Part shown: positions 1,077 to 57,306 of the stretch, piece after piece
Numbering within the stretch: the stretch's first letter is position 1
Layout: every line of letters starts with the position of its first letter
Origin: Octopus sinensis
Taxonomy: Eukaryota
Assembly: GCF_006345805.1 (NCBI RefSeq)
Contig: NC_042999.1
Span: forward strand, 157,170,001-157,234,000
DNA: 64,000 bases
Reading direction: 5' to 3'
Program-made: the position numbers and the translations under genes
The notes under the pieces: generated by a model
What the model was told of the DNA's origin: nothing
The model's input: the letters and a program-made list of their open reading frames with translations, nothing else
Databases searched by the model: none

Positions 1077-1238
1077 CAAGTTATTCTGACTCAAGATGAA
1101 AAGGGCAGCATTTATTTGATCAACAACAGCAATTTCTCTGTATTTATTAAAGATTATTTGGACATGAAACAGCCATACTTCTCGCAAGAAGTTATTGAAC
1201 AGCGAGGAGTTATTTTCGGCCAAGGAAAACCAATTAAA
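1077..1238 (+). CDS. Gene A exon (internal): divergent MH2 (Smad/DWB-like) domain, QVILTQDEKGSIYLINNSNFSVFIK...GKPIK
   Basis: ttttgtttttcag acceptor and gtaaga donor; 162 nt open frame, phase 0/0; joins the next exon to give KPIKIFDMEEF, which resembles Smad NLKIFNNQEF. Confidence 0.8.
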
Positions 1239-1308
1239 GTAAGACTAAAATACTTTAGTAAATATCATCTTTGTGGTTCACATTTGCACTGAGACTGTAA
1301 ACTAGTTG

Positions 1309-1696
1309 GTGGAAGCACTCCGTCGGTTACGACGACGAGGGTTCCGGTTGATCCGAATCAACGGAACAGCCTGCTCGTGAAATTAACGTGTAAGTGGCTG
1401 AGCACTCCACAGACACGTGTACCCTTAACGTAGTTCTCGGGGATATTCAGCGTGACACAGAGAGTGACTAAGGCCGGTCCCTTGAAATACAGGTACAACA
1501 GAAACAGGAAGTAAGAGTGAGAGAAAGTTGTGGTGAAAGAGTACAGCAGGGATCACCACCATCCCCTGCCGGAGCCTCGTGGAGCTTTTAGGTATTTTCG
1601 CTCAATAAACACTCACAACACCCGGTCTGGGAATCGAAACTGCGATCCTATGACCGCGAGTCCGCTGCCCTAACCACTGGGCCATTGTGCCTCCAC
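1309..1696 (-). mobile_element. SINE family B (tRNA-derived, gtggaggcgcaatggcccagtggttag head)
   Basis: A/B-box-like head; repeated family in this window. Confidence 0.9.
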
Positions 1697-1909
1697 TTGT
1701 AAACTAGTTACAGTTCATATTACTATAGAAGATACTTATTCAATTGTAACTGATCACTACAATAAATCAGGAGTGCCATAAAATATACCAGCACTACCAT
1801 CCACATTCCAAGACTAACTAATACTGTCATCTAGCACATCAATGCCACTATTCAATGCCATTACTGCCATATTACTACTACTACTACTACTACCATACAC
1901 TAACTTTAA

Positions 1910-2131
1910 CCCTTTTGTTACCAACCCGGCTGAAACCAGCTCTGGTTCTGTAATACAAATATCTTGTTTTTGTAAGTTTTGAATTAAAATCTTCCACCAA
2001 ATCTTAGTCACAATTTATGTTCCTAACACTATCTTAATGATAACGAAGTTATTTTACTAAATTCTTTGTTATATTTAGAATTAATTGAAAGAAACACAGA
2101 ACATCACAAAATAAATACAGTAACGAAAGGG
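1910..2131. mobile_element. TTAA-type (piggyBac-like) MITE family 1
   Basis: TIR ccctttYgttac/gtaacgaaaggg; ttaa left flank. Confidence 0.8.
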
Positions 2132-2819
2132 TAAAGCAGATCAATACAGCCATAATACATCCCAACATTACCATGAAATATACCAGAATTTCTTACTAGC
2201 CAATAACTCAAGCAAAATACCATTAATATGATGCCTTTTATTGCCATAGTATATACAAAAAAATATCAATTAAAGGAAAAAAAAAACATGTTACTATCAC
2301 ACTTTGCATCAATGCTATTACACAAGGTGTTACTAATATATATACTAACAATACAAATAAGAAAATGGAGGAACAAATTCATTTCGATCATCAACTTACA
2401 GATATTACAATTTCATATTATTTATTAATTATACAAATAGGAACATGAAAATCGGAATAAATTTGTTCCTCCATTTTCTTATTTGTATTATGAATTTACG
2501 GTAAAATATTTTAACCTTCACCCATTCAATACAATAAATGAATTAATTGCATTGCAATTATAAGCATTTACGTATTTAGTATTTGGGTACTTTACCAGCA
2601 GTATATTGGATAACTGACATCCCATAGTGGGTTACCTTCATAGTCCCTATCTTACTTTGTACTATACTAACAATATATATATATCTATACTGCCATATAA
2701 CATATGACAAGTGGCCCGGGAATGAAATTTGCTTAGTGGGTGCAAACTCAGGTCCAAAATTTTTTATGACAAAGTGGATTTTCTTTGCATTGTTAATATT
2801 AAAACAATTGCAGGTGTAA

Positions 2820-3012
2820 ACCTTTCTACTTTAGGCACAAGGCTTGAAATTTGCGTGGTGGTGGTACTTGACTGGTACATAATTTATTGACCCCCACTAA
2901 AGGATGAATGGCAAAATCGGCCTCAGTGGAATTTGAACTCAGAACGTAAAGGTGTACAAAATGCTGATAAGCATTCTGCCCAGCATGCTAATTATTCTGC
3001 TAGCTCACCCAC
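2820..3012 (-). mobile_element. SINE family D (gagctggcagaaacgttagc head)
   Basis: gttctgagttcaaattcc B-box-like motif; dispersed family. Confidence 0.7.
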
Positions 3013-3045
3013 TTAAATGCAGGTATAATAATAATTTTTATTATT

Positions 3046-3605
3046 ATGAGGGTTGGCTGTAAAGGTCATAAGCTGAGCAAGACACGCCCATAGAATGTGA
3101 CCAAGTGAAGTTCATTTTTTAACATAGTTCCTCTTACTGTCCACACCCTTCCATAAGTGTTGCCTAGCTTGGATCACATTGGGGAAGAAGGTATCCTGTT
3201 GGTCAAAAAAGTCATCATCACTGTGATACTGGTGCCCAGCCAAGCATTTTTTCATGTTGGGAAATAGACAATAGTCAGATGGAACCAAATAGGGAGGGTG
3301 ATCAACCAGTTCAAAGCCAATCACACAGCAGCCATTGAAACCAAGGACATGTGTACTGAAGCATTGTCCTAATAAAACAAAACCCCACCACTTCATCAGT
3401 TTTTCAGGGCATTTGGTCTTGATAGCCTTTCATAACTGCCTTAGCAAGTTGGCATAGAAGTCTCCATTGATGGTGTAATCATTCTGAAGATAATCAATAA
3501 ACACAATGCCTTTTTCATTCTAAAAAACTGAGGCCATCACCTTCCTTGCAGGTGAAATGACCCTGCCTTCTTTGGTGTGGACAAAGAGGTATGTTTCTAC
3601 AGCAT
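3046..3605 (-). mobile_element. Mariner transposase C-terminal remnant
   Basis: GKVMASVFW...DHPPY...PSDYCLFPNMKK...YVKK motifs; gagggt TIR-like end near 3046. Confidence 0.8.
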
Positions 3606-3779
3606 GACTAGATTGGGGAGTTGGAGATAATCATAATGTATGAAGATGAAAGGTGAGGAAGAGAAGTGAAACACTTTGGGAAGGGAAGGGGTATGTAGTT
3701 TGGTTTGTTGGGGGGTAAGGTGTGTGAAAGTGTTATTGTGGGACACAATACTTCTAGAACTCAGGTTTGCTAACATGGG

Positions 3780-3940
3780 TGGGTCTTTCCTAGAACCTCA
3801 CATCACCAGACATCTTGGTTCAGTGTCATTTCCTCTTCTGTAAGGCCCCAGCATCCTGAGATCAGTCCTCATCACTTCATCCCATGTCTTCCTGGATTTC
3901 CCACTCCCACAGGTGCCATCCACTTTCAGTGACTGGCACT
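3780..3940 (-). mobile_element. RTE LINE C-terminal remnant
   Basis: GKSRKTWDEVMRTDL motif. Confidence 0.55.
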
Positions 3941-3990
3941 TCTTTATACATTGGTATAACTAAAAATCAACATTTTGCAAAACCATTTAA

Positions 3991-4436
3991 CCCTTTCCTT
4001 ACTGTATTTATTTTGAGATGCTCTGTGTTTCTTTCAATTATTTTAAATATAACAAAGAATTTAGTAAAATAACTTAGTTATCATTAAGCTAGTAATAGGA
4101 ACATAAATTGTGAATAAGACTTGGTGGAAGATTTTAATTAAAAACTTATGAAAACAAGATATGTATATTAAAGGGCCAGAGCTGGTTTCAGTTGGGTTGG
4201 TAACGAAAGGGTTAACCCTTTCGTTACCGTATTTATTTTGAGATGCTCTGTGTTTCTTTCAATTATTTTAAATATAACAAAGAATTTAGTAAAATAACTT
4301 AGTTATCATTAAGTTAATGTTAGGAACATAAATTGTGACTAAGATTTGGTGGAAGATTTGAATTCAAAACTTATGAAAACAAAACATTTATACTAAAGAG
4401 CCAGAGCCGGTTTCAGCCGGGTTGGTAATGAAAGGG
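3991..4436. mobile_element. Tandem dimer of MITE family 1 sharing a central TTAA
   Basis: TTAA at 3987-3990, 4212-4215 and 4437-4440 bound two ~221-bp copies. Confidence 0.9.
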
Positions 4437-4468
4437 TTAAAGTTAGTTGCTTTCAATTTACTTCACAG

Positions 4469-4658
4469 ATCTTTGATATGGAGGAGTTTCGATCAGAAAT
4501 GACTCTTCAAATTTATCACAAGCAGTTCAACAGAGAGCAGTTAAAGTTTTTATGTAAAACTAATGTCCTTTTTGCTGATGCTCAACGCTGCATGGAATCT
4601 CCCAGCTGGATCATGGTGACAAATCTTCAAGCAATGGATTTACTATTTGATGACCAAG
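4469..4658 (+). CDS. Gene A exon: C-terminal part of the MH2-like domain (IFDMEEF...QLKFLCKTNVLF...SPSWIMVTNLQAMDLL)
   Basis: tttacttcacag acceptor and gtaaat donor; 190 nt, phase 0/1; aligns by eye with Smad QLTRMCTIRMSF...TPCWIELHLNGPLQWL. Confidence 0.85.
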
Positions 4659-4680: not shown

Positions 4681-5090
4681 TTTTACTCTTTTACATGTTT
4701 CAGTCGTTTGACTGCAGCCATGCTGGAGCACTGCCTTTTAGTCGAACAAATCGACCCCAGGACTTATTCTTTGTAAGCCTTAGTACTCATTCTATCGGTC
4801 TCTTTTGGTGAACTACTACGTTACAGGGACATAAACACACCAGCATCGGTTGTCAAGCGATGTTGGGGGGGGGGGACAAACACACATACACAAACACACA
4901 GACACACATATATATATACAAATTTGCGATGGGCTTCTTTCAATTTCCATCTACCAAATCCACTCACAAGGCTTTGGTTGGCCTGAGGCTATAGTAGAAG
5001 ACATTTGCCCAAGGTGCCACGCAGTGGAACTGAACCCAGAACCATGTGGTTGGTAAGTAAGCTACTTACCACACAGCTACTCCTGTGCCT
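4681..5090 (-). mobile_element. SINE family A
   Basis: Full-length copy. Confidence 0.9.
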
Positions 5091-5505
5091 ATTTTACCTT
5101 TTGTAGACAAAATAACTTAATAGCAAAATTAATCAAGATCATCATAGCTTCACCTTTGTTTTTCATTACTTTCATTACAATATTTTGGCCATTTGTCTGT
5201 ATTTTTATAAATATCTTTCCTTTACACTTGCTCCCACCATTCTGACTTTCCTCAGAATGTCAAGAAAGGGCAAAGTAATTATGACAATGGAAAAGGAATG
5301 AGGAGACTATGTTTGTTTTTCTAATTTGAATCAATTTCTAATTTTTCATTTCATTTGTGCTGTTATATTCATATATACATAATTTTATTGAAATTTGAAA
5401 TAGTCATCTCACCTCTATAAAAGCATTCTCAGGTTTACATTAGAATATGAATGGTAGTTTTACAGCCATTTTGAAAAACCAGAAATGTGATAAAATCATG
5501 AAATT

Positions 5506-6408: not shown

Positions 6409-6823
6409 TACTCTTTACTCTTTTACTCTTTTACTTGTTTCAGTCATTTGACTGTGGCCATGCTGGAGCACTACCTTTAGTCGAGCAAATCGACCCTGGG
6501 ACTTATTCTTTGTAAACCCAGTACTTATTCTATCGGTCTCTTTTGCCGAACCGCTAAGTGACGGGGACGTAAACACACCAGCATCGGTTGTCAAGCAATG
6601 CTAAGAGGACAAAGACAGACACACCAACACACACACATACATATATATATACATATATACGACGGGCTTCTTTCAGTTTCCGTCTATCAAATCCACTCAC
6701 AAGGCATTGGTCGGCCCGGGGCTATAGCAGAAGACACTTGCCCAAGGTGAAACGCAGTGGGACTGAACCCGGAACCATGTGGTTGGTTAGCAAGCTACTT
6801 ACCACACAGCCACTCCTGCGCCT
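6409..6823 (-). mobile_element. SINE family A inside the gypsy element
   Basis: Full-length copy. Confidence 0.9.
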
Positions 6824-6845
6824 ATTACAACAACAAATGCTGTAA

Positions 6846-7469
6846 TTGATGAATAGTAAGTCATCCAAAAATGCTGAAAAGACGTTCTTGTCAGATTATG
6901 TTGTAAACTCAATAATGGAATTTAAGTATGAACCAGACGAAGGAGTTACCTTCGAGGCGTACTATAGAAGATACGAACACATCTTCAATAAAGAGTGTAA
7001 AGATTGGGATGATGATATGAAAACACATCTAATCCTAAGAAAACTAGCAGCAAAAGAACATGAGCATTACAACAATTACATACTCCTGAAAAGACTTTCC
7101 GACATAAACTTTAGAAATATAATAGACATATTGTGTAAAATTTTTAGCAAGAAAAGCTCGTTGCTCAATACACGCTGGAAGTGTTTGAACTTAGAAAAGA
7201 ACAATGAGGAGAACTACATCATGTATGCTGGTAGAGTTAACAGAGAATGTGAGAAGTTCAAACTGGCCGACTTAGAGCCAGATATGTTCAAGTGCCTAAT
7301 ATTTACTCAGAGACTAAATGCAGAAAAAGACACAGAAGTAAGAACAAGAATTCTCACTAAACTAGAACAAAACCAAGTCGTAACCTTACAACAAGTGTTA
7401 GAAGAGTGTGAAAGAATAGTAAATCTAAAGCATGACACAGAGAAAATTGAACATAAAGATTGTTCCTAA
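6846..7469 (+). pseudogene. Gypsy gag ORF fragment (K02A2.6-like: EGVTFEAYYRRYE...CLIFTQRL...EVRTRILTKLE)
   Basis: 207-aa ORF with gag motifs, lying inside the LTR pair. Confidence 0.8.
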
Positions 7470-7762
7470 GTGAAATAAGTGTGAAACAGGCAGAATAGAA
7501 ATCAAGTGTGTACTAAAATACAGTACAAACAGGACAAAAACCAGGAAACAAACCCATATTTTGCATGCAGAGGTCTATACTTGAGAAAAAAATTGACATT
7601 TTAAGAAAGTGGAATGTTTCCATAGTGGAAAAATTGATCACGTAAAAGTGCACTGTAAAACGAAGATGACAAAATGTTGGAACAAAGAGAAGAGAATAAA
7701 CAAGATGTCATTGAAAGAAAATGGTAATGTGACAAAGAGGAAATTCGTAAATGTGAAAATTG

Positions 7763-7993
7763 AAAAAGCACCATCCGTCTGTGGCCGTTTGCCAGCCCCG
7801 TCTGGCTCCTGTGCGGGTAGCACGTAAAAAGCACCCACTACACACATGGAGTTGTTGGCGTTAGGAAGGGCATCCAGCCGTAGAAACACTGCCAGATCAG
7901 ACTGGGCCTGGTGCAGCCTTCTGGCTTCACAGACCCCAGTTGAACCGTCCAACCCATGCTAGCATGGAAAGCGGACGCTAAATAATGATGATG
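7763..7993 (+). mobile_element. Family E: (GAT)n-tailed RTE-related retroposon 3' end
   Basis: ggttggcgttaggaagggcatccagc...catgctagcatgga...gatgatg. Confidence 0.85.
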
Positions 7994-8261
7994 ACATGAC
8001 ATGAGAAATTCAGTTAGACCCTGGTAGTGATAGTACCATTGTGAATGAAGAAACTTGGCAGTATATTGGTAAGCCAAAACTAAGTAAATCTACAAAAGTA
8101 GTCCATGATGTTATGGGTAAAAGACGACATATTTCCAGATGTTTTCTTGGATGAACTGGGCCACTGCACAAAAACGAAGGCAAAAATTATAGCAAAACAA
8201 AGTGCAACACCTGTATTTAAGCCAAAACAGAATGTAGTGTTCACAGCACTAGAACAGGTAA

Positions 8262-8643
8262 GGAGGAGGCGCAATGGCCCAGTGGTTAGGGCAGCGGACT
8301 TGAGGTCATAGGGTCACGGTTTCGATTCCCAGACTGGGCGTTGTGAGTGTTTATTGAGCGAAAACACCTAAAAAGCCCCACGAGGCTCCGGCAGGGGATG
8401 GTGGTGATCCCTGCTGTACTCTTTCACCACAACTTTCTCTCACTCTTACTTCCTGTTTCTGTTGTACCTGTATTTCAAAGGGCCGGCCTTGTCACTCTCT
8501 GTGTCATGCTGAATATCCCCGAGAACTACGTTAAGGGTGCACGTGTCTGTGGAGTCCTCAGCCACTTACACGTTAATTTCACGAGCAGGCTGTTCCGTTG
8601 ATTCGGATCAACCGGAACCCTCATCGTCGTAACCGACGGAGTG
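8262..8643 (+). mobile_element. SINE family B inside gypsy pol
   Basis: Full-length copy. Confidence 0.9.
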
Positions 8644-10860
8644 AAAAGGAAGAAAGAACAGGTAAATAAGGAACTTGAAAGCCAAGGAATAATCGAGAAG
8701 ACAAACCACTCAGATTTGGCAGCACCTACGGTCTACATAAAAACGAAAAATAATAAGTCAAGAGTTTGTACAGATTTTTCAACCGGGTTGAATGATTGCT
8801 TAATTTCATGCAACTACCCATGGCCAAATCCTGAGGAAGTGTTCGCAAAATTGAATGGAGGAAAATTCTTCTCAAAATTAGATCTTATTTACAAATCCAA
8901 GTAGAGGAAGAATGCTCACACTTATTGACCATTAATACACACCGTGGCTTATTTAAATTTAAGCGGCTTCCCTTTGGTGAAAAATGTGGCTCTTAGGATA
9001 CAATGTTGGTGGACAGGGATTTTGCTATCACCTATTTAGACGATATTCTAATGAAAACGAATCACACAAACAACATATGGAGTACAGAAAAAGGGTATTC
9101 GAAAAGATAAGAGAATACAGCTTTAAGTTAAGTGTAGAAAAATGTAAGTTCTTTTTAAATAAAAAGTAAATACTTGGGTTAGATAATACGTAAAAGTGGA
9201 CAGAAACCTGATCCATTCAGAACAACTGCGATAAAAAATACGCCCACACTGAATAATGTGACTATGCTACAAGCATTCTTGGGAATTGTAAATTACTACC
9301 AAATTTATATTTTTGTTTAGAGAATGCATGGGCTAAGACTACACACCTTCATTGGTCAGTTAAAGTTGAGACAGTGTCACGTGACAACTTGCTGGGACTG
9401 CCTGCTGGAGCCTAGCAGTAGGTATTTAAAGGGAAAAAATTCGACAAGACAGTCAGTCGTCTACTGACACTCGTTGACGCTACATTGAAGAGGCCAGGGA
9501 ACAGAAGAAAGAAGACATGCACCCAACACCAGAGCTAAAGACACCTCCGAAAGGAGGGGGGCACCACGTCAAAACGGTACAGGAGTAGGGGCCAAAACCA
9601 GACGATACCAAAACACTGCAAGCCATTCAAAGATACAGTAATCACAGCATTGAGTTCAGAAAGGGAAATATAAAATGTAATGTGGAATGTGGTCCTGAAT
9701 TACTGGTAACCCTTGAAGACCTGATGATGTCTTGAGCTAAATGGATCCTACAAAGGAGCTGTTGTAGTAGCAGACCATGAAACACGGTTAAAATTCCTTT
9801 TTCCAATGGAAGGACTCTGTTTAATGATACGAAAAAGTCAAAATGGTGCTAGACTGATAAGTGCTAGAAGGCATTTGATGAATTCAAAAGCATTTTAACA
9901 TCAAATGTATTGTTAACTCATTTTGCTCTGGAGCTGGATACTATATTGGCTACAGATACAAGTGATTACATGCAGGAGCAGGGCTTCTAGATAAATATGA
10001 TGATGGGAGTAAAAAGACTATAGTTATGCAACACAATCATTATTACTAGCAGAAAGGAACTATAGTCAAATAGAAAAGGAAGCATTAGCAATCATATTCA
10101 GTGTGAAAAAATTCCATAGATTTATTCATGGAAGAAATTTCTGTCTACAAATGGATCATCACCCACTACTGTTAGTATACGGTTCTAAAAAAGGAATACC
10201 AACACACACAGCGAATAGACTAGTGATGGGGTACTACATTATTGAATTATGATTACAAAATGGATTTACTGTCAAAAAAACAAGGGCATGTGGATGGTTT
10301 GTCCAGACCGATACCAAAACACTGCAAGCCATTCAAAGATACAGTGATCACAGCATTGAGTTCAGAAAGGGAAATATAAAATGTAATGTGGAATGTGGTC
10401 CTGAATTACTGGTAACCTTTGAAAACATGAAACAAAATGCAGAAAAGGACAAATTCATAACAGAAATGAAAAGCATATTGCGGACAGGAAAAGTAAATAG
10501 GAACAAGATTGGTGTGAAACGAAACCAAGATGTGAACCTATACTGAATTTGTGATGGTGTTCTGATGTATGCACAGAGAATAGCAATACCTGAAACACTG
10601 CAAAAGAAAATGTTGAAAGAATTCTATGCTGGATATTCTGGTCTTTCGAGAATGAAAGCTTTAATGCATAGCTATGTGTATTAACCAAAATGGATAGAGA
10701 AATTGAAAATTTAGTGAAAGGCTGCAGAGGATAAAAAGTGAACCCTGGCCAAAAGTAGATGTTCCATAGTTGAGACTACACATCAATTTTGCTGGTCCCT
10801 TAAACGGTTCATACTACTTAGTGGTAGTAGATAGTTTAAAACCAACCTCCTCAACTATGG
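8641..10860 (+). pseudogene. Disrupted gypsy pol (RT AAPTVYIK...VCTDFSTGLN...FSKLDL; RNase H; integrase)
   Basis: RT and RNase H motifs across frameshifts and stop codons. Confidence 0.8.
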
Positions 10861-10871
10861 CAAACTGTCTA

Positions 10872-11749
10872 CAGGGTGTCCCAAAAGTCATTGATGGGTT
10901 TCAATTTTTAATAACTTCCTTAACTTTACAAATAAAAGCATGAAATTTTGATACAATATAAAGGGCATAATAGAAATTAATAAGCATAAGTCAAATTTTG
11001 CAACACTGCTACATCACATATGAAAGTTGACATCGCTTAAATGGCAGCTATTTTCGGCTTCACATGTCTGTGCTCTTTCCAAAACTTGCACCATAACACT
11101 CTCAAGAGTTTCAGACCCCACTTCTCTGGTTTCTCTATTAATGTTCTTCAGTTGCACCAGGGTCTCTGGGTGTTGATGTAAACCCTCTCTTTCAGGAATC
11201 CCCACAAGAAAAAATCTGGGCTAGTCAAGTCTGGTGAATGTGAAGGCCAGTTGACATTACTGTAGCAGAATATTCTCTATCCAAAGCACTGCCATAACAT
11301 TGTTTCTCTTGTGGTATGAGCAGTTGCTCCATCTTGCTGGAACCATATATGAGGTCTACTTTGAATGGCCTTCACGTTCACCAGACTTGACTAGCCTGGA
11401 TTTTTTTCTTGTGGGGATACCTGAAAGAGAGGATTTATGTCAACAAACCAGAGACCCTGGTGCAACTGAGAGAGAACATCAATAGAGAAATCAGAGAAGT
11501 GGGGGTCTGAAACTCTTGAGGGTTTTATGGTGCAAGGTTTGGAAAGAGCACATGTGTGGGAAGCTGAAAATGGCTGCCATTTAAGTGATGTCATTTTTTA
11601 TTTGTGATTTAGTGGTACTGCAAAATTTGACCCATGCATATTAATTTCCAGTATGTTCTTTATATTGTATGAAAATTTCATGTATTTATTTGTAATATTA
11701 AGGAAGTTATTAAAAATTGAAACCCATCACTGTCTTTTGGAACACCCTG
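10872..11749. mobile_element. Tc1/mariner-derived palindromic (foldback) element
   Basis: TA TSD and TIR cagggtgtcccaaaag; both arms are transposase 3' ends (WPSRSPDL); WFQQDGATAH on the minus arm. Confidence 0.85.
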
Positions 11750-12055
11750 TACATGAACTATTTATGAGATTTGGTATCCCAGATATGACAGTGTCTGACA
11801 ATGGAAAGTAATTTGCGTCTTTTGAGTTTAAAAAAAGTTTTGTAAAATGTTCACTGTAGAGCATGTAACTACTGCGCCATACCATCCCAGATCTGACAGA
11901 CAGGCAGGACGCTTTGTTGATACGTTCAAGAGAGCCCTAAGAAAGTCGAATAAGGAAGTCACAGAGTATACCATGTGACATAAAATCCAAATACACCAGC
12001 AGGTATGTCACCAACGGAGCTGATGTTTGTGAGGAAAATAAAATCAGTCTTCATC

Positions 12056-12266
12056 CCCTTTCGTTACCAACCCGGCTCTGGCTCTTTTGTACAGATGTCT
12101 GGTTTTCAAAAGTTCTGAATTAAAACCTTCCACCAAACCTTAGTCACAATTTATGTCCCTAACTCTAGCTTAATGATAACGATGTTATTTTACTTAATTC
12201 TTTGTTATATTTAACATAATTGGAAGAAACACTGAGCATCTCAAAATAAATTCAGTAACGAAAGGG
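12056..12266. mobile_element. MITE family 1 copy inside the gypsy element
   Basis: ccctttcgttacc...gtaacgaaaggg followed by ttaa. Confidence 0.8.
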
Positions 12267-12744
12267 TTAAGAAAAGAAAAATTGCAACAGATAATACAGC
12301 AAGATGTTTCAAAATTGGTGAAAATATATTTGTTAGAGCATATAAAAATGGAAAACAAAGTTGGGAAGATGGCGTGATTACCAAACACATAGGAAAAATG
12401 CTATACTTGGTAAAAGGAAGAAAATGGGTATACAAGAGACACACGAATCAACTAAAAAAGATTTGTTCAGCAGGAACTCAAAAGAAGGGAAAAAATCAAT
12501 GGAATGTTTATATGATACTTTTCAAGTAGCAATGCTACTACAAATAATTGAACCCAGACACACAAGCAAAAGAAAAAGAAAATGTACGGAGCTCCTGGAA
12601 GTGGATGCTAAATGGGAAAAATATTAGATGTGTAACGGTATAAAAAAAAATCAAGAAAGCGAGGTGGGGGATGTAAAAATTGTTGCTAATAAAAAGAAAT
12701 AAAATGACACTCCCTAAGAAGAAAAGAAAATTTAAAAGGGGAGA

Positions 12745-12933
12745 TGTTATGGGGATAATAGTAATAATGGAATACCCCTACCACATGATGAGTGGTATGT
12801 GCTAGTTGTTACAAATATTGTGACATCAAGCAGTCAGGGTAGTCAGTCATAGATAGTCGTGTCCTACTTGTCTAACTAACTATATTGCTATACCAGAGTG
12901 GACATCATAACAGTCCTGCGTTGGGTTACAACA
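12745..12933 (+). repeat. 3' LTR of the gypsy element
   Basis: tgttatggggataatagtaata...ttacaaca; preceded by the PPT and followed by the TSD ctttc. Confidence 0.85.
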
Positions 12934-14259: not shown

Positions 14260-14673
14260 CTCTCTTTCTCTCTTTTACTTGTTTCAGTCATTTGACTGTG
14301 GCCATGCTGGAGCACCGCCTTTAATCGAGCAACTCGACCCCTGGGACTTATTCTTTGTAAGCCCAGTACTTATTCTATCAGTCTCTTTTGCCGAACTGCT
14401 AAGTGACGGGGACATAAACACACCAGCATCGGTTGTCAAGCAATGCTAGGGGGACAAACACAGACACACAACACACACACATATACACACATATATATAT
14501 ACATATATACGACGGGCTTCTTTCAGTTTCCGTCTACCAAATCTACTCACAAGGCTTTGGTCGGCCCGAGGCTATAGTAGAAGACACTTGCCCAAGGTGC
14601 CACGCAGTGGGACTGAACCCGGAACCATGTGGTTGGTAAACAAACTACTTACCACACAGCCACTCCTGTGCCT
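14260..14673 (-). mobile_element. SINE family A
   Basis: Full-length copy. Confidence 0.9.
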
Positions 14674-14859
14674 ATCCATATGGGAGGAAATGAAGCCAAC
14701 ACTAAAAATTACTTCACTGCGACCAAGGTCATGATTATGTTTCTGGTTTAAAATAATTTAAGTTATATCCAATATGGGTTTTTTTCCCCTCAGGCAAGAA
14801 GCTACCTCACCATAACTGCTGAAGCATTATGATGAGATTGTAAAGAAATTAATTACTTA

Positions 14860-15286: not shown

Positions 15287-15360
15287 TGTACTCAGAATTA
15301 GAAGAGCTTATAGCCAACTTTATTGCAGGTGGTACTCAACGCAAGATAAAGAACAAGAGG
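15287..15360 (+). CDS. Gene A exon (VYSELEELIANFIAGGTQRKIKNKR)
   Basis: ttttcaactttcag acceptor and gtaatg donor; 74 nt, phase 1/0, matching both neighbouring exons. Confidence 0.75.
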
Positions 15361-18226: not shown

Positions 18227-18570
18227 ATACTATTTATGTATGTAAAGACTAATGCTATGCTTTGAAGTGCTTCCTTTTTCTTCTTTGAAGTTTCATGAAT
18301 ATAGACTACTATTCAAAGTTGCTATGTTTATATAGCTTCTATATTCACCTTTCCTCTCTGTATCCTTTGCTTTTTCTGGCACATTGTTCATTTCTAATTA
18401 ATATCCTGTTTTCATCAACATTTCTAACACCACTATATAATAAGATAAATTCTTTATAGAATTAGAATTATTTATGTCCAAATGAGATTTTTTAAAATTT
18501 ATTTATAACTTTTACTGTTCATCATTGTAAAAACAATGATATTAACTGAGCTCTTATTTTTCTCTTCTAG

Positions 18571-18706
18571 AAGAAAACATTCAAAAGAAGAATTTACACT
18601 AGTCAGAAAGAATCTGACCTAAAACGCAAAACAAGGATGTCTTTGGCCAAGAAAGGCTACAAAGTAAAGGACTTTATGAAATATAGCTGGGAAAATGAAG
18701 ATGTTG
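18571..18706 (+). CDS. Gene A exon (KKTFKRRIYTSQKESDLKRKTRMSLAKKGYKVKDFMKYSWENEDV)
   Basis: tttttctcttctag acceptor and gtaaga donor; 136 nt, phase 0/1, open frame. Confidence 0.8.
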
Positions 18707-24372: not shown

Positions 24373-24456
24373 TTTCTCCTGAAGATGCCTTAAACACAAA
24401 CCAAATGGAAGAGTTCTTTGAGCCACAAAAAGATTATTTGTTTGACTTTGAAACTG
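24373..24456 (+). CDS. Gene A exon (VSPEDALNTNQMEEFFEPQKDYLFDFET)
   Basis: ttttatttacag acceptor and gtaatc donor; 84 nt, phase 1/1, open frame. Confidence 0.75.
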
Positions 24457-24472
24457 GTAATCTTTCACATGT

Positions 24473-24684
24473 TTACTCTTTCATTCTTTTACTTGTTTCA
24501 GTCGTTTGACTGCGGCCATGCTGGAGCACCGCCTTTAGTCGAGCAAATCGACTCCAGGACTTATTCTTTGTAAGCCCAGTACATATTCTATCAGTCTCTT
24601 TTGCCGAACCGGTAAGTTACGGGGACGTAAACACACCAGCATAGGTTGTCAAGTGATATTGGGGAGACAAACACAGACACGCAA

Positions 24685-24721
<37 letters not shown>

Positions 24722-24897
24722 CATACATATATACGACAGGCTTCTTTCAGTTTCCATCTACCAAATCCACTCACAAGGCTTTGGTCGGCCCAAGCCTATA
24801 GTAGAGGACACTTGGCCAAGGTGCCACGCAGTGGGACTGAACCCGGCACCATGTGGTTTGTAAGCAAGCTACTTACCACACAGCCACTCCTGCGCCT
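24473..24897 (-). mobile_element. SINE family A
   Basis: Full-length copy starting ~16 bp after the donor of the exon at 24373-24456. Confidence 0.9.
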
Positions 24898-25166
24898 ATA
24901 ATTATTTTCACAAATAATCTAAGCTTAACTGAATAATACATGTCAGCATATTATTATTTTAAACTAATATTAAGTGGTGAGAATCAAACCCATGCTCAAC
25001 ACATGATCTATTTACAACCCTGCTTTAAATATTTATGAGGTTCAGAGTAAATATTTGTGTCCGTGTCACTTGATATTTTTTCTTTCTTTTTTCGTGCTGT
25101 GCTTCTAGCAATGATATGTGCCCACAGCTATCTGCTGGCTGATTAATCTAAGACATTGTGCACAAT

Positions 25167-25586: not shown

Positions 25587-25970
25587 TGGAAGCACTCCGT
25601 CAGTTACGACGACGAGGGTTCTGGTTGATCCGAATCAACGGAACAGCCTGCTCATGAAATTAACGTGTAAGTGGCTGAGCACTCCACAGACACGTGTACC
25701 CTTAACGTAGTTCTCGGGGATATTCAGCGTGACACAGAGAGTGACAAGGCCGGCCCTTTGAAATACAGGTACAACAGAAACAGGAAGTAAGAGTGAGAGA
25801 AAGTTGTGGTGAAAGAGTACAGCAGGGATCACCACCATCCCTGCCAGAGCCTCGTGGAGCTTTAGGTGTTTTCGCTCAGTAAACACTCACAACGCCCGGT
25901 CTGGGAATCAAAACCGCGATCCTATGACCGTGAGTCCACTGCCCTAACCATAGGGCCATTGCGCCTCCAC
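25587..25970 (-). mobile_element. SINE family B
   Basis: Full-length copy. Confidence 0.9.
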
Positions 25971-26412
25971 TACTACCACTCTATATAAACTAACACACAC
26001 ATTATAGCTCCCCTATTTCGATACCAATACTTTGGCTGTAAACTACGAACGCAAAAGAATCTGCTGAATAATTATAATAGGAATAATAAACAAAGATATG
26101 AAGATAGGGAACATAATTCTTATGAACTGCTTTCTTTATTGTTATTGTTTTTTTGTTTTGTTTTTTTTTTGTAGATGATACAGAACATAAGCATGCCAAG
26201 CTTGTTGGAGACAAAATGTGGGCAAGAGTGAAATACACTTTAGAAAACATGAGCAATGAGAACATGTAATGTTAGAGTTGATGGCTTAAAGCTCAACTGG
26301 CATAATTGACGCTATTAATGATTTCATAAAATGAACTCATATTACACAGCCACATACATTTGAACTTTCATCCTACACTGCAAGGACACTCTTTTTTGTC
26401 AGCTGTCAACAG

Positions 26413-35508: not shown

Positions 35509-35920
35509 AGACGCAGGAGTGACTGTGTGGTAAGTAGCTTGCTAACCAACAACATGGTTCCGGGTTCAGTCCCACTGCGTGGCATCTTGGGCAAGTGTCT
35601 TCTGCTACAGCCCTGGGCCGACCAAAGCCTTATGAGTGGATTTGGTAGGCGGAAACTGAAAGAAGCCTGTCGTATATATGTATATACATATATAGGTATG
35701 TGTGTGTGTGTTTGTGTGTCTGTGTTTGTCTCCCAAGCATTGCTTGACAACCGACGCTGGTGTGTTTACGTCCCTGTCACTTAGCAGTTCAGCAAAATAG
35801 AACGATAGAATAAGTACTGGGCTTACAAAGAATAAATCCCGGGGGTCGATTTGCTCGACTAAAGGCGGTGCTCCATCATGGCCGCAGTCAAATGACTGAA
35901 ACAAGTAAAAGGGTAAAGAG
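35509..35920 (+). mobile_element. SINE family A
   Basis: Full-length copy. Confidence 0.9.
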
Positions 35921-37269: not shown

Positions 37270-37308
<39 letters not shown>

Positions 37309-37334
37309 CACATCTATATATATATATATAATAT

Positions 37335-37365
<31 letters not shown>

Positions 37366-37732
37366 TACACACTATATATGTATATATAATATATATAGAT
37401 GTATATATATTACTATATATATTTATATATATATATATATATTATATATATATATAATATATATATATACATATATATATTTATATATATATAGATATAT
37501 ATATATTATATTATATATATATATATATCATCATCTATCATCATCATCATATATATATGATATATATTTATATATATATATAATATATATATATTATATT
37601 TATATATATATATATATATAATATATATATTATATATATATATATATAATATATATATATTTTATATAATCTATTTATATATATCTTATATATATATATA
37701 TATATCTTATATTTATATATATATATATGATC

Positions 37733-37787
<55 letters not shown>

Positions 37788-37811
37788 GTATTTTATTATA
37801 TATCTAATATA

Positions 37812-37844
<33 letters not shown>

Positions 37845-38028
37845 TATATAATATATATTATATATTTATATATCTATGTATGTATGTATATATATATATA
37901 TATAGATATATATATATTTTATATATGTATGTATGTATATATATATATATATAATATATATTATATTTATATATATATGTATGTATGGATGTATGTAATG
38001 TATATATATAATATATATATAATATATC

Positions 38029-38062
<34 letters not shown>

Positions 38063-38115
38063 ATCTATGTATGTATGTATGTATTATATATTATATATAT
38101 ATATATATATATTAT

Positions 38116-38147
<32 letters not shown>

Positions 38148-38158
38148 TATATATATTT

Positions 38159-38209
<51 letters not shown>

Positions 38210-38494
38210 ATATATATTATTATATATATATATTTATATATATTATTATATATAATATTTATATATATATATGTATGTATGTATATATATATATAATTTA
38301 ATATTATTATGTATATGTATGTATGTATGTTGTAATATTATATAATATATATATTTATATATCTATGTATGTATGTATATATATATATAATATATATATA
38401 TATATTTATATTGTAGTATGTATATATATATATATATTATAATATATATATTTATATATATATGTATGTATGTATGTGTATGTATGTATATATA

Positions 38495-38550
<56 letters not shown>

Positions 38551-38617
38551 ATGTATGTATGTATGTATATTTATATATATATATATATTATTATATATAT
38601 ATATGTATGTATGTATG

Positions 38618-38652
<35 letters not shown>

Positions 38653-38701
38653 GTATGTATGTATATATATATATATTATTTATATTATAATATGTTGTAT
38701 G

Positions 38702-38746
<45 letters not shown>

Positions 38747-38751
38747 GTATG

Positions 38752-38792
<41 letters not shown>

Positions 38793-38797
38793 TATGT

Positions 38798-38832
<35 letters not shown>

Positions 38833-38841
38833 GTATGTATG

Positions 38842-38876
<35 letters not shown>

Positions 38877-39090
38877 GTATGTATGTATGTATATATATTA
38901 TATATATATATATATATTATATTTATATATAATATGTATGTATGTATATATATATATATATATATTAATATTTATATATATGTATGTATGTATGTATATA
39001 TATATATAATATATATATTGATATATATATATGTATGTATGTATATATATATATATAATATTTATATATATATTATGTATGTATGTATGT

Positions 39091-39122
<32 letters not shown>

Positions 39123-39135
39123 ATATGTATGTATG

Positions 39136-39166
<31 letters not shown>

Positions 39167-39283
39167 TATATGTATGTATGTATGTAGATATATATATATT
39201 ATATATTATATTATTTATATCTATATATGATTGTCTGTATGTATATATCATATATATATATTATTATATATATTGTATATGTA

Positions 39284-39323
<40 letters not shown>

Positions 39324-39400
39324 ATTATATTTATATATATATATGTATGTATGTATGGTATATTATATATATTATATATATATATATAATAATTTCAACA
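37270..39400. repeat. Large degenerate (TA)n/(TATG)n microsatellite field
   Basis: Direct reading. Confidence 0.95.
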
Positions 39401-42950: not shown

Positions 42951-43335
42951 GTGGAGGCGCAATGGCCCAGTGGTTAGGGCAGCGGACTCGCGGTCATAGG
43001 ATCGCGGTTTCGATTCCCAGACCGGGCGTTGTGAGTGTTTATTGAGCGAAAACACCTAAAGTTCCATGAGGCTCCGGCAGGGGATGGTGGTGATCCCTGC
43101 TGTACTCTTTCACCACAACTTTCTCTCACTCTTACTTCCTGTTTCTGTTGTACCTGTATTTCAAGGGGCTGGCCTTGTAACTCTCTGTGTCATGCTGAAT
43201 ATCCCCGAGAACTACATTAAGGGTGCACGTGTCTGTGGAGTGCTCAGCCACTTACACGTTAATTTCACGAGCAGGCTGTTCCGTTGATTCGGATCAACCG
43301 GAACCCTCATCGTCGTTGCCGATGGAGTGCTTCCA
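42951..43335 (+). mobile_element. SINE family B
   Basis: Full-length copy. Confidence 0.9.
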
Positions 43336-43533
43336 TCCATCCAATATGTAAGTCTGAAGTTTAACTACTGAATTAATTCAATATAAACCTAGTATATAGG
43401 CACAGAGTATAATGAAAAAAAAAGACACAAGAGAATGGAGATTTATTCATGATTTAATCAGCAACATGCATACGTTTCAAATAGAATGGCACAGCTCAAA
43501 ATGCTGCGATACTTCAATTATATATATATATAT

Positions 43534-43944
43534 AGGCGCAGGAGTGGCTGTGTGGTAAGTAGCTTGCTAACCAACCACATGGGTCTGGGTTCAGTCCCAC
43601 TGCGTGGCATCTTGGGCAAGTGTCTTCTGCTATAGCCCCGGGCCGACCAATGCCTTGTGAGTGGATTTGGTAGACGGAAACTGAAAGAAGCCTGTCGTAT
43701 ATATGTATATATATATATATGTGTGTGTGTGTGTTTGTGTGTCTGTGTTTGTCCCCCTAGCATTGCTTGACAACCGATGCTGGTGTGTGTTTACGTCCCC
43801 GTCACTTAGCGGTTCGGCAAAAGAGACCGATAGAATATGTACTGGGCTTACAAAGAATAAGTCCCAGGGTCGATTTGCTCGACTAAAGGCGGTGCTCCAG
43901 CATGGCTGCAGTCAAATGACTGAAACAAGTAAAAGAGTAAAAGA
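43534..43944 (+). mobile_element. SINE family A
   Basis: Full-length copy. Confidence 0.9.
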
Positions 43945-44719
43945 ATATATATATTCAGTCAATCCTATATTTGATCGATTAAAATGCTACAGGGAAAGAG
44001 GAATTCAACACCATCCGTCTCTTATCAAAGCTCTATCATCACTGTTTATATTGCTAAACATTTTAAGAGTTCAGCAATATTTAACTCACCAGTTCATGCT
44101 CAAAATGGTAGGGTAAGTTGAAATAAACCTATTTAGTAGATATATTATTCAGATCATGATAAAATTGTAATTTGATTCATAATATCTCTCAACAACTAGA
44201 ATGATTAGAAGACAGGATGAGTTAAGGAGAATTCTAAAGGAAAAATTTTGAAAGATGGTATTCACTAAGGAGAATATTGAGAATATTCCATTACACATTA
44301 GAAGACTGTAAGTTAGGAATAATTATGTTCCAAACTTGGATAAGAAAGCTAGGATAAAGCAATTTTAAAAGTATAAAGTATATACATAAAATAAAATTCA
44401 AATTGAAAGAGGCTTAATTAAATCAGAGATTAAGGACTCAAATTAATACTTGTCACTTATTAGACATAAGTATGCTAATCATAAGAAGCATGCATTATAA
44501 AAATTACAAAATTGAGATTAAAAAATTTAATATATATCTATATATATATACACACACACTATATAAAAATATAACTTAAATTAAACTTTAATTTTAAAAT
44601 TATAGTTTAATTCTAGTTATAAATATAGATATTTTTAAAATATCATTCAAATAATTGAAAATGATATAGTTGTATATACTAAATCATACTAGCTTTGCTA
44701 AATACACTGGACCATATAT

Positions 44720-53227: not shown

Positions 53228-53607
53228 GAGCACTCCGTCAGTTGCGACGATGAGGGTCCCAGCTGATACGATCAACCAAACAGCTTGCTCGTGATATTAA
53301 CGTGCAAGTGGCTGAGCACTCCACAGACACATGTACCCTTAACGTAGTTCTCGAGGATATTCAGCGTGACACAGATTGTGACAAGGCTGGCCCTTTGAAA
53401 TACAGGTACAAGAGAAACAGGAAGAAAGAGCGAGAGAAAGTTGTGGTGAAGGAGTACAGCAGGGTTCACCACCATCCCCTGCTGGAGCCTCGTGGAGCTT
53501 TAGGTGTTTTCGCTCAATAAACACTCACAATGCCCGGTCTAGGAATCGAAACCGCGATCCTCCGACCGCGAGTCCGCTGCCCTAACCACTGGGCCATTGC
53601 GCCTCCA
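53228..53607 (-). mobile_element. SINE family B
   Basis: Full-length copy. Confidence 0.9.
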
Positions 53608-53782
53608 ATTGGCCAAGACAGACTTTGACAATTCTATTTTTGTTACAGCTGGGAGAAAAGGACATTTTTTCCATTGACTGCAGAGAGTGAAATATTGATT
53701 AAAGATGTCTAAAGTACCTTGTTTTCATATAATGGGGGAAAACACTTTCAAAATCAATCACCGTGTTGATGGGCTTTCCTAT

Positions 53783-53996
53783 TCTCTTTACTCTTTTACT
53801 TGTTTCAGTCATTTGACTGTGGCCATGCTGGAGCACTGCCTTTAGTCGAGCAAATCGACCCCGGGACTTATTCTTTGTAAGCCCAGTACTTATTCTATCG
53901 GTCTCTTTTACCGAACCGCTAAGTGACGGGGACGTAAACACACCAGCATCGGTTGTCAAGTAATGCTAGGGGGACAAACACAGACACACAAACATT

Positions 53997-54046
<50 letters not shown>

Positions 54047-54212
54047 TACGACGGGCTTCTTTCAGTTTCCGTCAACCAAATCCACTCACAAGGCTTTGGT
54101 CGGCCCAAGGCTATAGTAGAAGACACTTGCCCAAGGTACCACGCAGTGGGACTGAGCCCGGAACCATGTGGTTGGTTAGCAAGCTACTTACCACACAGCC
54201 ACTCCTGCGCCT
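53783..54212 (-). mobile_element. SINE family A
   Basis: Full-length copy. Confidence 0.9.
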
Positions 54213-54285
54213 ATTAATGACTTTTAAGATGAGAACTTGATATCAAGACCTGAATGTTAATGAAAATCTATGAACTCAAACTTAC

Positions 54286-54559: not shown

Positions 54560-55570
54560 TTCATAAGTAAAGTGAGTAACATTGTAAAGTGAGTAACATT
54601 GTACAAGTTGGCAGTGAACTCCTCAAGAAACACTCTCTTCCTGAGGATCTCCTATACAGCCCCAAAACAGCTGGGCTCTCTTACCTCAGAGAAGACCTGG
54701 ATGGAAAGCACTCAGCATACGAAAAAAAAATGACTATGCATGGGTATGTTGTTCAGAAGCTTAAAGGAGACAGTACAGTTGACATGGAGCGCAGCCTCTC
54801 TTGGACACAAAACCACTACATCGCATTAGACTTTGAATCCAGGAACAGGAGATTTCCACAAAGTACCCAGTGAACAAGAGAGACAGTGACGCTCTTGTAA
54901 TCCCAAGGTGCAACTGCATGTGTAGGCTATGTCATGTTTCTGTTGAAGACATCATGCATGTGATTAGCAGCTGTCCTAAAATGTTGTCACGGTACTACCT
55001 CCCTATGCGGCACGATGCTGTTGCTAAAACAATTTACAATGTCATCTGCAAAAAAGACTGTCCTGAAATAAACTTAGAAAATCTCTCTGTTATGGAATAC
55101 ATTCAGAAACACCAACTCAAGGAATACTGGTGGAATATTCCTACAAAAACTTCTGTCACATGTAAGCATAAAGATATTGTTGTTTGGGACAGAGGGGCAA
55201 AGGTGTGTACCATCATAGAGCACAGCTGCCCTGCAGATATAAAAATCAAATAAAAAGGGTATATCTATGGACAACTGCTTCGAAACCTCCAGCTTCTATA
55301 TTCAAACTATAAATTCATATATTCATACCAATAATAATTGGGGCACTAGGTTTTGTTAGTAAATGCTTAAAGGAGAATCTGGATAAACTGGGATTTTCAG
55401 AAAGAGATATTGACCAGCTGATTCATACATTACAACGGCAATTTGTGAGTGGGACAGTAAAAATATGCAAAACTTTTCTCAAGTTCCAAATGTGAATTTG
55501 TCTGTGTTAACTACATCCCAAAGATGGAGCCTTGTATCTTTGTTGGAAACCAGCTCCCCGCTCAGTGGAA
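54560..55570 (+). mobile_element. R4/Dong-like RLE non-LTR retrotransposon 3' fragment
   Basis: CRLC...EDIMHVISSC...RHDAVA zinc knuckle; DIVVWD restriction-like endonuclease; IPIIIGALG. Confidence 0.85.
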
Positions 55571-56294: not shown

Positions 56295-57306
56295 ATTCTT
56301 TTACTTGTTTCAGTCATTTTGACTGTGGCCATGCTGGAACACTGCTTTTTAGTCAAGCAAATTGACCTTTAGACTTATTCTTTGTAAGCCTGATACTTAT
56401 TCTATCAGTCTCTTTTGCAGAACTGCTAAGTTATGGGAATATAAACACACCAAGATAGGTTGTCAAATGATGGAGTGAAGCAATGGTGGCATGACAAACA
56501 CAGACACAAACACATACATACATACATACATACATACATACATACATACCTACATACATACATACCATACATACATACATACATACATACATACATACAT
56601 ACATACATACATACATACATACATACATACATAACATACATACATACATACCTACATACATACATACATACATCATACATACTACATACATACATCATAC
56701 AATACATACATACATACATACATACATACATAATACATACATACATACATACTACATAATACATACATACATACATACATACATACATACACATACATAC
56801 ATACATACATACATACATACATACATACATACATACATACATACATACATACATACATACATACATACATACATACATACATACATACATACATACATAC
56901 ATACATACATACATACATACATACATACATACATACATACATCATACATACATACATACAATACATACATACATACATACATATACATACATACATACAT
57001 ACATACACATACATACATACATACATACATACATACATACATACATACATACCTACATACATACATACATACATACATACATACATACATACATACATAC
57101 ATACATACATACATACATACATACATACATACATACATACATACATACATACAACAGGCCTCTTTCAGTTTCTGTCTACCAAATCCACCCACAAGGCTTT
57201 CATTGACCCGAGAGAAGATACTTGCCCAAGATGCCATGCAGTGGAACTGAACCCTGAACCATGAGGTTGGGAAGCAAGCTTCTTACCAAAAGTCATGCCT
57301 GCACCT
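56295..57306 (-). mobile_element. SINE family A with an expanded internal (TACA)n
   Basis: SINE tail and head flank a ~640-bp microsatellite. Confidence 0.8.
56510..57152. repeat. (TACA)n microsatellite
   Basis: Direct reading. Confidence 0.95.

Follow-up and report, generated by a model that had tools for sequence, protein, structure and literature searches.

A motor-less N-alpha-MH2 gene of Octopus sinensis with the tail motifs of MH2-tailed myosins

The N-alpha-MH2 domain was defined as an MH2 domain with an extra helix, a short L3 loop and neither the MH1 nor the SSXS feature (Beich-Frandsen 2015; PMC4388265). In that work the domain of Drosophila Expansion was found to have no part in TGF-beta signalling, and the family was stated to be conserved across the phyla Mollusca, Annelida and Arthropoda. 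Expansion (CG13188) and Rebuf (CG13183) localise apically, and the chitin synthase Kkv depends on them, specifically on their N-alpha-MH2 domain, to translocate chitin; a motif termed CM2 lies in their C-terminal half (PMC9894549). MH2 domains have also been described at the end of myosins, i.e. as 'myosin III-like with C-terminal MH2' in a choanoflagellate and a sponge (Sebe-Pedros 2014; PMC3942036) and as MH2-tailed orphans in annelids and molluscs next to the class-80 myosins of Ambulacraria, with motors reported to be akin to chitin-synthase myosins (Kollmar and Muhlhausen 2017; PMC5583752). Here we analysed a stretch of 64,000 nucleotides of Octopus sinensis (NC_042999.1, positions 157,170,001 to 157,234,000 of the forward strand; the window), which holds the 3' part of the gene LOC115209391. 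We favor the view, at a probability of about 0.7, that its product is a TGF-beta-independent, motor-less 'tail-only' adaptor related to the MH2-tailed myosins, which is the best explanation of the data as a whole.

The window starts at CM016861.1:157,170,001, and its positions 1-36269 are 100% identical to the LOC115209391 locus of that sequence. The gene has 10 coding exons. Exons 1-4 (amino acids (aa) 1-144) sit 6-50 kb upstream of the window and encode the extra helix and the first half of MH2, preceded by a disordered N-terminus; exons 5-10 are inside the window. The product has 390 aa (isoform X1, XP_029633640) and is an 'uncharacterized protein' in RefSeq and an uncharacterised 'MH2 domain-containing protein' in UniProt. 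Neither a signal peptide nor a membrane domain was predicted in it. A first-pass annotation of the window, made from its letters alone, had joined the segments 1077-1238 and 4469-4658 into part of an atypical Smad-like gene. The spliced peptide of 117 aa was exactly as quoted there, with an in-frame junction and both segments bounded by ag and gt. The two segments are two of the six coding exons in the window and cover the C-terminal half of the MH2 domain only.

All six exons are on the plus strand. Exon 5 (1077..1238, aa 145-198) encodes the middle beta-strands of the MH2 sandwich, as assigned from its AG/GT sites and translation, and an orthologue of it is present in Octopus bimaculoides, O. 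vulgaris and Argonauta. Exon 6 (4469..4658, aa 199-261) carries the helix region with KIFDMEEF, strand beta10, the L3 loop, strand beta11 and the last MH2 helix. Exons 7-10 were found by tblastn of the O. bimaculoides protein against the window; their phases are compatible and all have AG/GT sites. Exon 7 (15287..15360, aa 262-286) forms part of a long helix after the MH2 domain, exon 8 (18571..18706) encodes aa 287-331, exon 9 (24373..24456, aa 331-359) is an acidic segment of low model confidence, and the coding part of exon 10 (26175..26269) comprises aa 359-390 plus the stop codon TAA at 26267-26269. The resulting six-exon model of 246 aa is identical to the last 246 residues of XP_029633640. 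Exon 8 has a NAGNAG tandem acceptor (tAG/AAG) at 18568-18573, where either the AG at 18569-70 or that at 18572-73 can be used. This explains the RefSeq isoforms X1 and X2, the latter having one Lys fewer. The first AG is AA in O. bimaculoides, which leaves the downstream acceptor alone usable and accounts for the sole one-codon gap between the two species.

The best relative is a 331-aa protein of O. bimaculoides, which is 78% identical and colinear with the window model down to the stop. Models with 10 exons were rebuilt in O. sinensis, O. vulgaris, O. bimaculoides and Argonauta hians; all of their introns are GT-AG, and all four models translate to the deposited proteins. The exon junctions are conserved across the four genomes, which served here in place of the check by transcripts that the first-pass annotation had proposed. 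From its canonical splice sites and open frame, as read in the sequence, LOC115209391 is a real protein-coding gene. The O. vulgaris orthologue (CAI9720400.1, 388 aa; OX597816.1:168484833-168559699) is annotated as 'myosin-IIIa-like isoform X1' despite being without a motor, a name that is transferred from the relatives combining myosin and MH2.

The identity of the domain was examined by profile and structure comparison. The 117-aa peptide matched the Pfam MH2 family PF03166 with 38 bits over profile positions 66-173 of 174, the curated cut-off being 25 bits. Full-length cephalopod proteins scored 42-46 bits, compared with 74-114 bits for their relatives. At E values up to 1, MH2 was the sole Pfam family in the full-length proteins of O. 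sinensis, O. vulgaris, O. bimaculoides and Argonauta, which agrees with the earlier reading of an MH2-only protein. The claim that the peptide follows the motif order of Smad2/3 also held in a profile alignment with Smad2 (KIFNNQEF..., QLTRMCTIRMSF, TPCWI). Among solved structures the peptide had one match, Drosophila Expansion (4r9p), with an E value of 3.5e-8, and phmmer against the Protein Data Bank (PDB) likewise returned 4r9p as the sole match (E 2e-9).

An AlphaFold2 model computed from an alignment of 38 sequences had a predicted local distance difference test (pLDDT) score of >90 across most of residues 61-280. It shows a helix at residues 61-83 preceding the beta-sandwich; this predicted helix, encoded upstream of the window, had means of 83-94 pLDDT in 10-residue blocks. 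The beta-sandwich, a helical bundle and a long helix at 260-296 follow. Disorder is predicted for the N-terminus and, short helices at two tail motifs excepted, for most of the tail. In a Foldseek search of the PDB the N-alpha-MH2 domain of Expansion (4r9p) ranked first with an E value of 5e-14, a template-modelling (TM) score of 0.80 normalised to the target and a root-mean-square deviation of 2.7 A. The MH2 domains of Smad2/3/4 (TM 0.64-0.74) and Smad7 came next, followed by the association domains (IADs) of the interferon regulatory factors IRF5/9/4/3. The SMAD/FHA-type match that the first-pass annotation had proposed to look for with PF03166 and with AlphaFold and Foldseek was thus found, and the model places the octopus protein in the Smad/FHA fold of the Expansion type. 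An identity as an IRF IAD, suggested by 'KIFD..EF', was dropped, because there was no Pfam IRF-3 match and the IRF structures ranked far below Expansion and the Smads.

In Smads the L3 loop has about 17 residues with the pattern GWG...YRRQ and forms the pocket for phosphoserine and receptor, and SSXS is the C-terminal phosphorylation motif of the receptor-activated Smads. In the octopus gene the L3 codons lie at 4571..4609 (+), including those of the two conserved flanking residues, as located by alignments to Expansion and Smad2. Between the conserved Phe and Trp we counted 11 residues in the octopus protein (F-ADAQRCMESPS-W), 12 in Expansion (F-VKSENDILECPI-W) and 18 in Smad2; in the profile alignment the Smad2 loop has six extra residues relative to the family profile FvkdeadlldsPcW. 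The GWG/YRRQ residues are absent from the octopus loop when aligned with Smad2, as the first-pass annotation had seen. Furthermore, an MH1 domain was not detected by Pfam in any of the four full-length cephalopod proteins, including the 390-aa protein obtained by extending the gene model upstream. An SSXS tail is absent as well; the protein ends in ...YTLENMSNENM. Neither an IRF DNA-binding domain nor Pfam IRF-3 (PF10401) had a match in the cephalopod proteins.

These data bear on the possibility that the gene encodes a canonical Smad that has diverged, either an inhibitory or a co-Smad, or else a protein of the IRF IAD type that works in receptor-driven signalling. The octopus protein does share the MH2/IAD fold with them. 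With the MH2 domains of Smad2/3/4 it has the core order in common, i.e. KIF..EF, a hydrophobic beta10 and PxW in beta11, at 16-20% identity. Yet it differs from them by the lack of MH1, GWG/YRRQ and SSXS and by an L3 loop that is about 7 residues shorter, and the IRF DNA-binding domain is missing, too. The family profile scored Smad2 with 62 bits as opposed to 399 bits for Expansion. The IADs of IRF3/4/5/9 have the same Smad/FHA superfold and were a much weaker structural match, at rank 46 and lower with E values of 1e-6 to 1e-4. As far as sequence can show, the domain content refutes a canonical Smad or IRF protein, and we consider this explanation hardly conceivable. Judged by its domains the octopus protein cannot serve as a receptor-activated Smad, having no DNA-binding domain, L3 pocket or phospho-tail. 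The independence of TGF-beta receptors that had been proposed as an interpretation is consistent with the lack of MH1 and SSXS and with an L3 loop as short as that of Expansion.

Expansion and Rebuf resemble the octopus protein in the extra helix before the MH2 beta-sandwich, the shortened L3 loop and the lack of MH1 and SSXS, and Expansion 4R9P is the best match both by sequence and by fold. Identity to Expansion is about 20% over the structural alignment and about 19-23% to arthropod-type relatives in a sequence alignment. On the other hand, the CM2 motif (xDPYYCGL) is missing from the octopus protein, which instead has two other motifs after the MH2 domain. The first is basic, RKTR...YSW (KRKTRMSLAKKGYKVKDFMKYSW, codons 18622..18690, +), and is located about 60 residues past the MH2 domain in the cephalopod proteins. 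The second is a C-terminal helix with WAK or WAR (KLVGDKMWARVKYTLENM, 26198-26251, +), which is encoded by exon 10 and modelled by AlphaFold2 as a helix at 374-385.

When 1.8 billion representative proteins were searched exhaustively with HMMER, 66 relatives emerged. In a census of motifs by regular expressions PYYCGL was confined to arthropod-type matches and was seen in 0 cephalopod proteins. YSW and a C-terminal WAK were present in all cephalopod orthologues and in every protein with myosin and MH2 examined, where the basic motif is part of the myosin tail. Examples are the proteins of Sinanodonta (KAL3892185, 1199 aa), Patella (XP_050406757, 'unconventional myosin-IXAa'), Batillaria and Acanthaster (XP_022083353, 'myosin-IIIb-like'). 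CM2 was never found together with the pair of YSW and C-terminal WAK; one CM2 protein has an isolated YSW. The signature of RKTR...YSW plus WAK was observed in this analysis and is not a published criterion. In the MH2-tailed myosins the preceding helix and the MH2 domain are followed by RKTR...YSW and C-terminal WAK in the same order as in the octopus protein, and identity over the half of the MH2 domain encoded in the window is 30-35%. The octopus protein differs by having no motor and no IQ motif, by loss of an IGxG stretch and by a much longer branch.

A search with the Sinanodonta protein returned MH2-tailed myosins from bivalves, a chiton, Lingula, annelids, echinoderms, hemichordates and sponges. 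Proteins with myosin head, IQ and N-alpha-MH2 were also seen in gastropods, and such proteins are annotated variously as myosin IIIa, IIIb, IXAa, X, Ic or Id. The deuterostome members extend the Expansion-type MH2 domain beyond protostomes, contrary to the limit given in PMC4388265. Kinship of the motors to chitin-synthase myosins was not visible when the relatives of the Sinanodonta protein were ranked; the next-best myosins were of the kinase, SH2 and ankyrin types, and the reported kinship was not used as evidence.

A neighbour-joining tree of the MH2 core, rooted with Smad2 and with 200 bootstraps, gave an ecdysozoan Expansion/Rebuf clade of arthropod and tardigrade sequences with 98% support, and the cephalopod proteins were outside of it. 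The four cephalopod proteins formed a 100% clade on a long branch, which joined a transcript-derived protein at 90% inside an unresolved grade of myosin-tail sequences. Thus the absence of CM2, the position outside the 98% clade, the myosin-type tail motifs and the lack of a motor led us to class the octopus protein as a motor-less, tail-type member of the N-alpha-MH2 family. By its sequence it is a homologue, not an orthologue, of Expansion/Rebuf. The first-pass annotation had pointed to Drosophila Expansion and Rebuf, and in this it was right about the fold, 4r9p being the top Foldseek match, while the tail motifs are closer to those of the MH2-tailed myosins. None of the well-characterised genes proved to be a clean orthologue.

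An orthologue of Expansion/Rebuf with the same job, i.e. acting apically in chitin translocation, for example in the linings of beak, radula or suckers, would agree with several of these results. Expansion is the nearest solved structure by sequence and fold, the N-terminal helix and the short L3 loop are both there, the family is reported from molluscs (Mollusca, Annelida and Arthropoda; PMC4388265), and N-alpha-MH2 is precisely the part needed for chitin translocation (PMC9894549). Yet CM2 is absent, and the octopus protein lies outside the ecdysozoan clade and has the tail motifs of the MH2-tailed myosins. Moreover, the nearest motors without MH2 were myosin-III, SH2 and XVI, with no chitin-synthase myosin among the matches listed. 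Together with the rate of replacement within Octopus (see below), this makes the explanation unlikely.

Outside the cephalopods, every close relative that shares the tail motifs has a myosin head and IQ, so the annotated gene might be just the 3' part of an MH2-tailed myosin gene that is longer than annotated and has its motor exons farther upstream. The O. vulgaris protein bears the name 'myosin-IIIa-like', and in Littorina one 90% cluster contains a 566-aa model with MH2 alone next to a myosin of 1164 aa. However, the four octopod annotations begin at an ATG without a motor; three of these are independent, Argonauta reusing the O. sinensis gene name. Searches by tblastn with three motor domains found no myosin motor in the window or, for O. 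sinensis and O. bimaculoides, in the 10 kb that precede the start, and the octopus protein had no Pfam match to Myosin_head or IQ. Among the best 120 relatives of the Sinanodonta protein there was no cephalopod protein combining PF00063 and PF03166. A hidden motor is thus very improbable.

The evolutionary rate of the gene was assessed by pairwise comparisons, which rest on few synonymous sites. Colinear BLAST blocks served as the neutral control; local flanks of 250 nt were dropped for this purpose because species-specific insertions of short interspersed elements (SINEs) adjoin several exons. The window is colinear with the O. bimaculoides locus, and non-coding DNA had 6.7% mismatches and 0.7 gap openings per 100 nt. 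Over the 245 codons of the window the two species differ by 12.4% of nucleotides and are 73% identical in aa, with a synonymous rate (dS) of 0.123 and a non-synonymous rate (dN) of 0.138. The full coding sequence yielded a dS of 0.114, a dN of 0.156 and an omega (dN/dS) of 1.37. The range of 1.13-1.37 for dN/dS was not significantly different from 1. Differences from O. bimaculoides at the non-synonymous sites of the window codons were about two times as frequent as in the non-coding DNA aligned (Fisher P 4e-7), a figure that may overstate the excess since dS is above the intronic rate. Between O. sinensis and O. vulgaris, at a non-coding divergence of 1.77%, we counted 23 non-synonymous and 0 synonymous differences. 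The corresponding Fisher P for non-synonymous versus synonymous sites was 0.013, and the chance of zero synonymous changes among 23 under neutrality was 0.009. Each Octopus species compared with Argonauta had an omega of 0.31-0.33, with dS saturated near 1.2.

At the same time the frame was preserved. In simulations with 157 random substitutions the open reading frame (ORF) stayed open in 0.08% of the runs, a mean of 7 stops being expected. In the 741 coding nt of the window about 5 indels were expected at the non-coding rate, and 1 was seen, which is in frame. All 18 internal splice sites per species are intact in the four octopods. Several islands are kept to Argonauta, namely GAWA.ITY, YVIDNS, IGLRS, FPVFIKDY, IFD.EEFR.EM, ESPSWI.VTN, KRKTRMSL...KDFMKYSWE.ED and KMWAKV.YTL. 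Selection keeps the reading frame open, while most residues are replaced at or above the neutral rate within Octopus. Such replacement is unexpected for a core matrix-deposition factor, a further point against an orthologue of Expansion/Rebuf. Positive selection on LOC115209391 is likely, though not proven.

Some of the data weigh against a tail-only adaptor derived from a myosin. The adaptor role is inferred by analogy from the fold and the relatives, and motor exons more than 10 kb upstream of the start are possible. In the tree the YSW sequences were an unsupported grade, monophyletic in 2.5% of the bootstraps; for this reason two short motifs are the main ground for descent from a myosin tail. 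In the cephalopod proteins the IGxG stretch, which is conserved otherwise, has been lost. In O. vulgaris a family-invariant Trp at the start of the MH2 domain is Gly (GAWALITY to GAGALITY), and this change plus a dN/dS near or above 1 could reflect a weakening function.

Taken further, the last points would describe a gene that drifts to loss under relaxed constraint after losing its motor or partner, its intact ORFs being transient. A dN/dS of 1.13-1.37 between O. sinensis and O. bimaculoides, the lost IGxG stretch, the Gly at the invariant Trp and the low Pfam MH2 scores (42-46 bits against 74-114 in relatives) all fit this scenario. However, it would have to accommodate an open frame and 18 intact internal splice sites in four species including Argonauta, a simulated chance of 0.0008 for the open ORF, and the absence of any frameshifting indel despite 0.7 indels per 100 nt in introns. 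Furthermore, the motif islands are kept to Argonauta with a dN/dS of 0.33, and the ratio of 0 synonymous to 23 non-synonymous changes between O. sinensis and O. vulgaris is above the neutral expectation (P 0.009-0.013). We therefore regard decay of the gene as improbable.

We thus prefer a tail-only adaptor. By analogy with its fold and relatives, the octopus protein would act as a protein-protein adaptor without TGF-beta input. It would probably bind the same partner or partners as the MH2-tailed myosins through the surface of N-alpha-MH2 and the two tail motifs. In the relatives these motifs belong to the cargo end of the myosin; without a motor the protein may be a free adaptor or a competitor of the motor-linked version. 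Action at the apical cortex, perhaps with chitin synthase, would follow from the analogy with Expansion/Rebuf, and a chitin-related role in octopus is possible on this basis. More tentatively, octopods may have replaced an ancestral MH2-tailed myosin by a motor-less tail-only gene under recurrent positive selection, an idea we hold to be doubtful at present. If it were true, the gene would serve in an interaction that evolves fast, for instance in reproduction, immunity or conflict, and not as a housekeeping adaptor, and the arthropod Expansion/Rebuf and the octopus gene would represent independent losses of the motor from one ancient cargo-binding tail of myosin-MH2 type.

The gene itself was in the databases, and the domain type and its short L3 loop have been known since 2015. 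The suggestion of a mollusc-specific or poorly annotated family was apt in its second half, given the RefSeq entry 'uncharacterized' and the misnamed O. vulgaris protein; the family is neither new nor mollusc-specific (PMC4388265, PMC3942036, PMC5583752). Two observations are modestly new, namely a myosin-tail signature on a protein that has no motor and the very high speed of evolution. LOC115209391 and LOC106870245 were not mentioned in the literature searched. We found no paper in it linking Expansion/Rebuf to MH2-tailed myosins; MH2, chitin synthase and myosin appear together only in PMC3942036 and PMC5583752. The analysis assigns a structural class to a gene left 'uncharacterized' or mislabelled as myosin in three octopus annotations, and it joins two literatures without mutual citation, one on the fly chitin-deposition factors Expansion/Rebuf and the other on the MH2-tailed myosins of molluscs, annelids, echinoderms and sponges. 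With its high rate of replacement and its kept frame, the gene is a candidate case of adaptive evolution among cephalopods.

The remainder of the window is AT-rich DNA with many SINE copies. No annotated gene was found downstream of LOC115209391 up to window position 36269, the limit of the annotation compared. ORFs of 94-145 aa at 3112-3396 (-), 54580-55492 (+) and 59452-60382 (both strands) had no Pfam match and are probably remnants of mobile elements. Intron 6 of LOC115209391 contains a decayed insert resembling a long terminal repeat retrotransposon (6846-12600, +) with many frame breaks and a nested SINE. Its ORF at 6846-7466 matches DUF7083 (65 bits), and fragments of RVT_1 (weak) and RT_RNaseH (52 bits) were seen. 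Alignment with the O. bimaculoides locus covers 6822-7457 and resumes at 12833, most of the intervening 5.4 kb being missing from that locus.

Two families of short interspersed repeats were delineated. Copies of the first, about 400 bp long, are at 334-717, 4684-5092, 6424-6825, 14270-14682, 24485-24899, 35509-35915, 43520-43947 and 53780-54214. Those of the second, about 380 bp long, are at 1307-1696, 8265-8643, 25592-25976, 42951-43330 and 53230-53607. Window copies of both families share 87-96% identity with those at the O. bimaculoides and O. sinensis loci, and some are species-specific insertions. Several repeats directly adjoin exons; one begins 26 nt past exon 6 and another about 30 nt past exon 9. 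A 225-bp unit is present in two tandem copies (91% identical) at 3987-4440, which end 28 nt before the acceptor of exon 6, and a related segment in reverse orientation lies near 1900-2120. Further downstream we noted an imperfect (TA)n tract of 2.1 kb at 37289-39388, with a GC content as low as 14%, and an (ACAT)n tract of 640 bp at 56512-57153. Strong excursions of GC skew occur at 34-36 kb and 42-44 kb.

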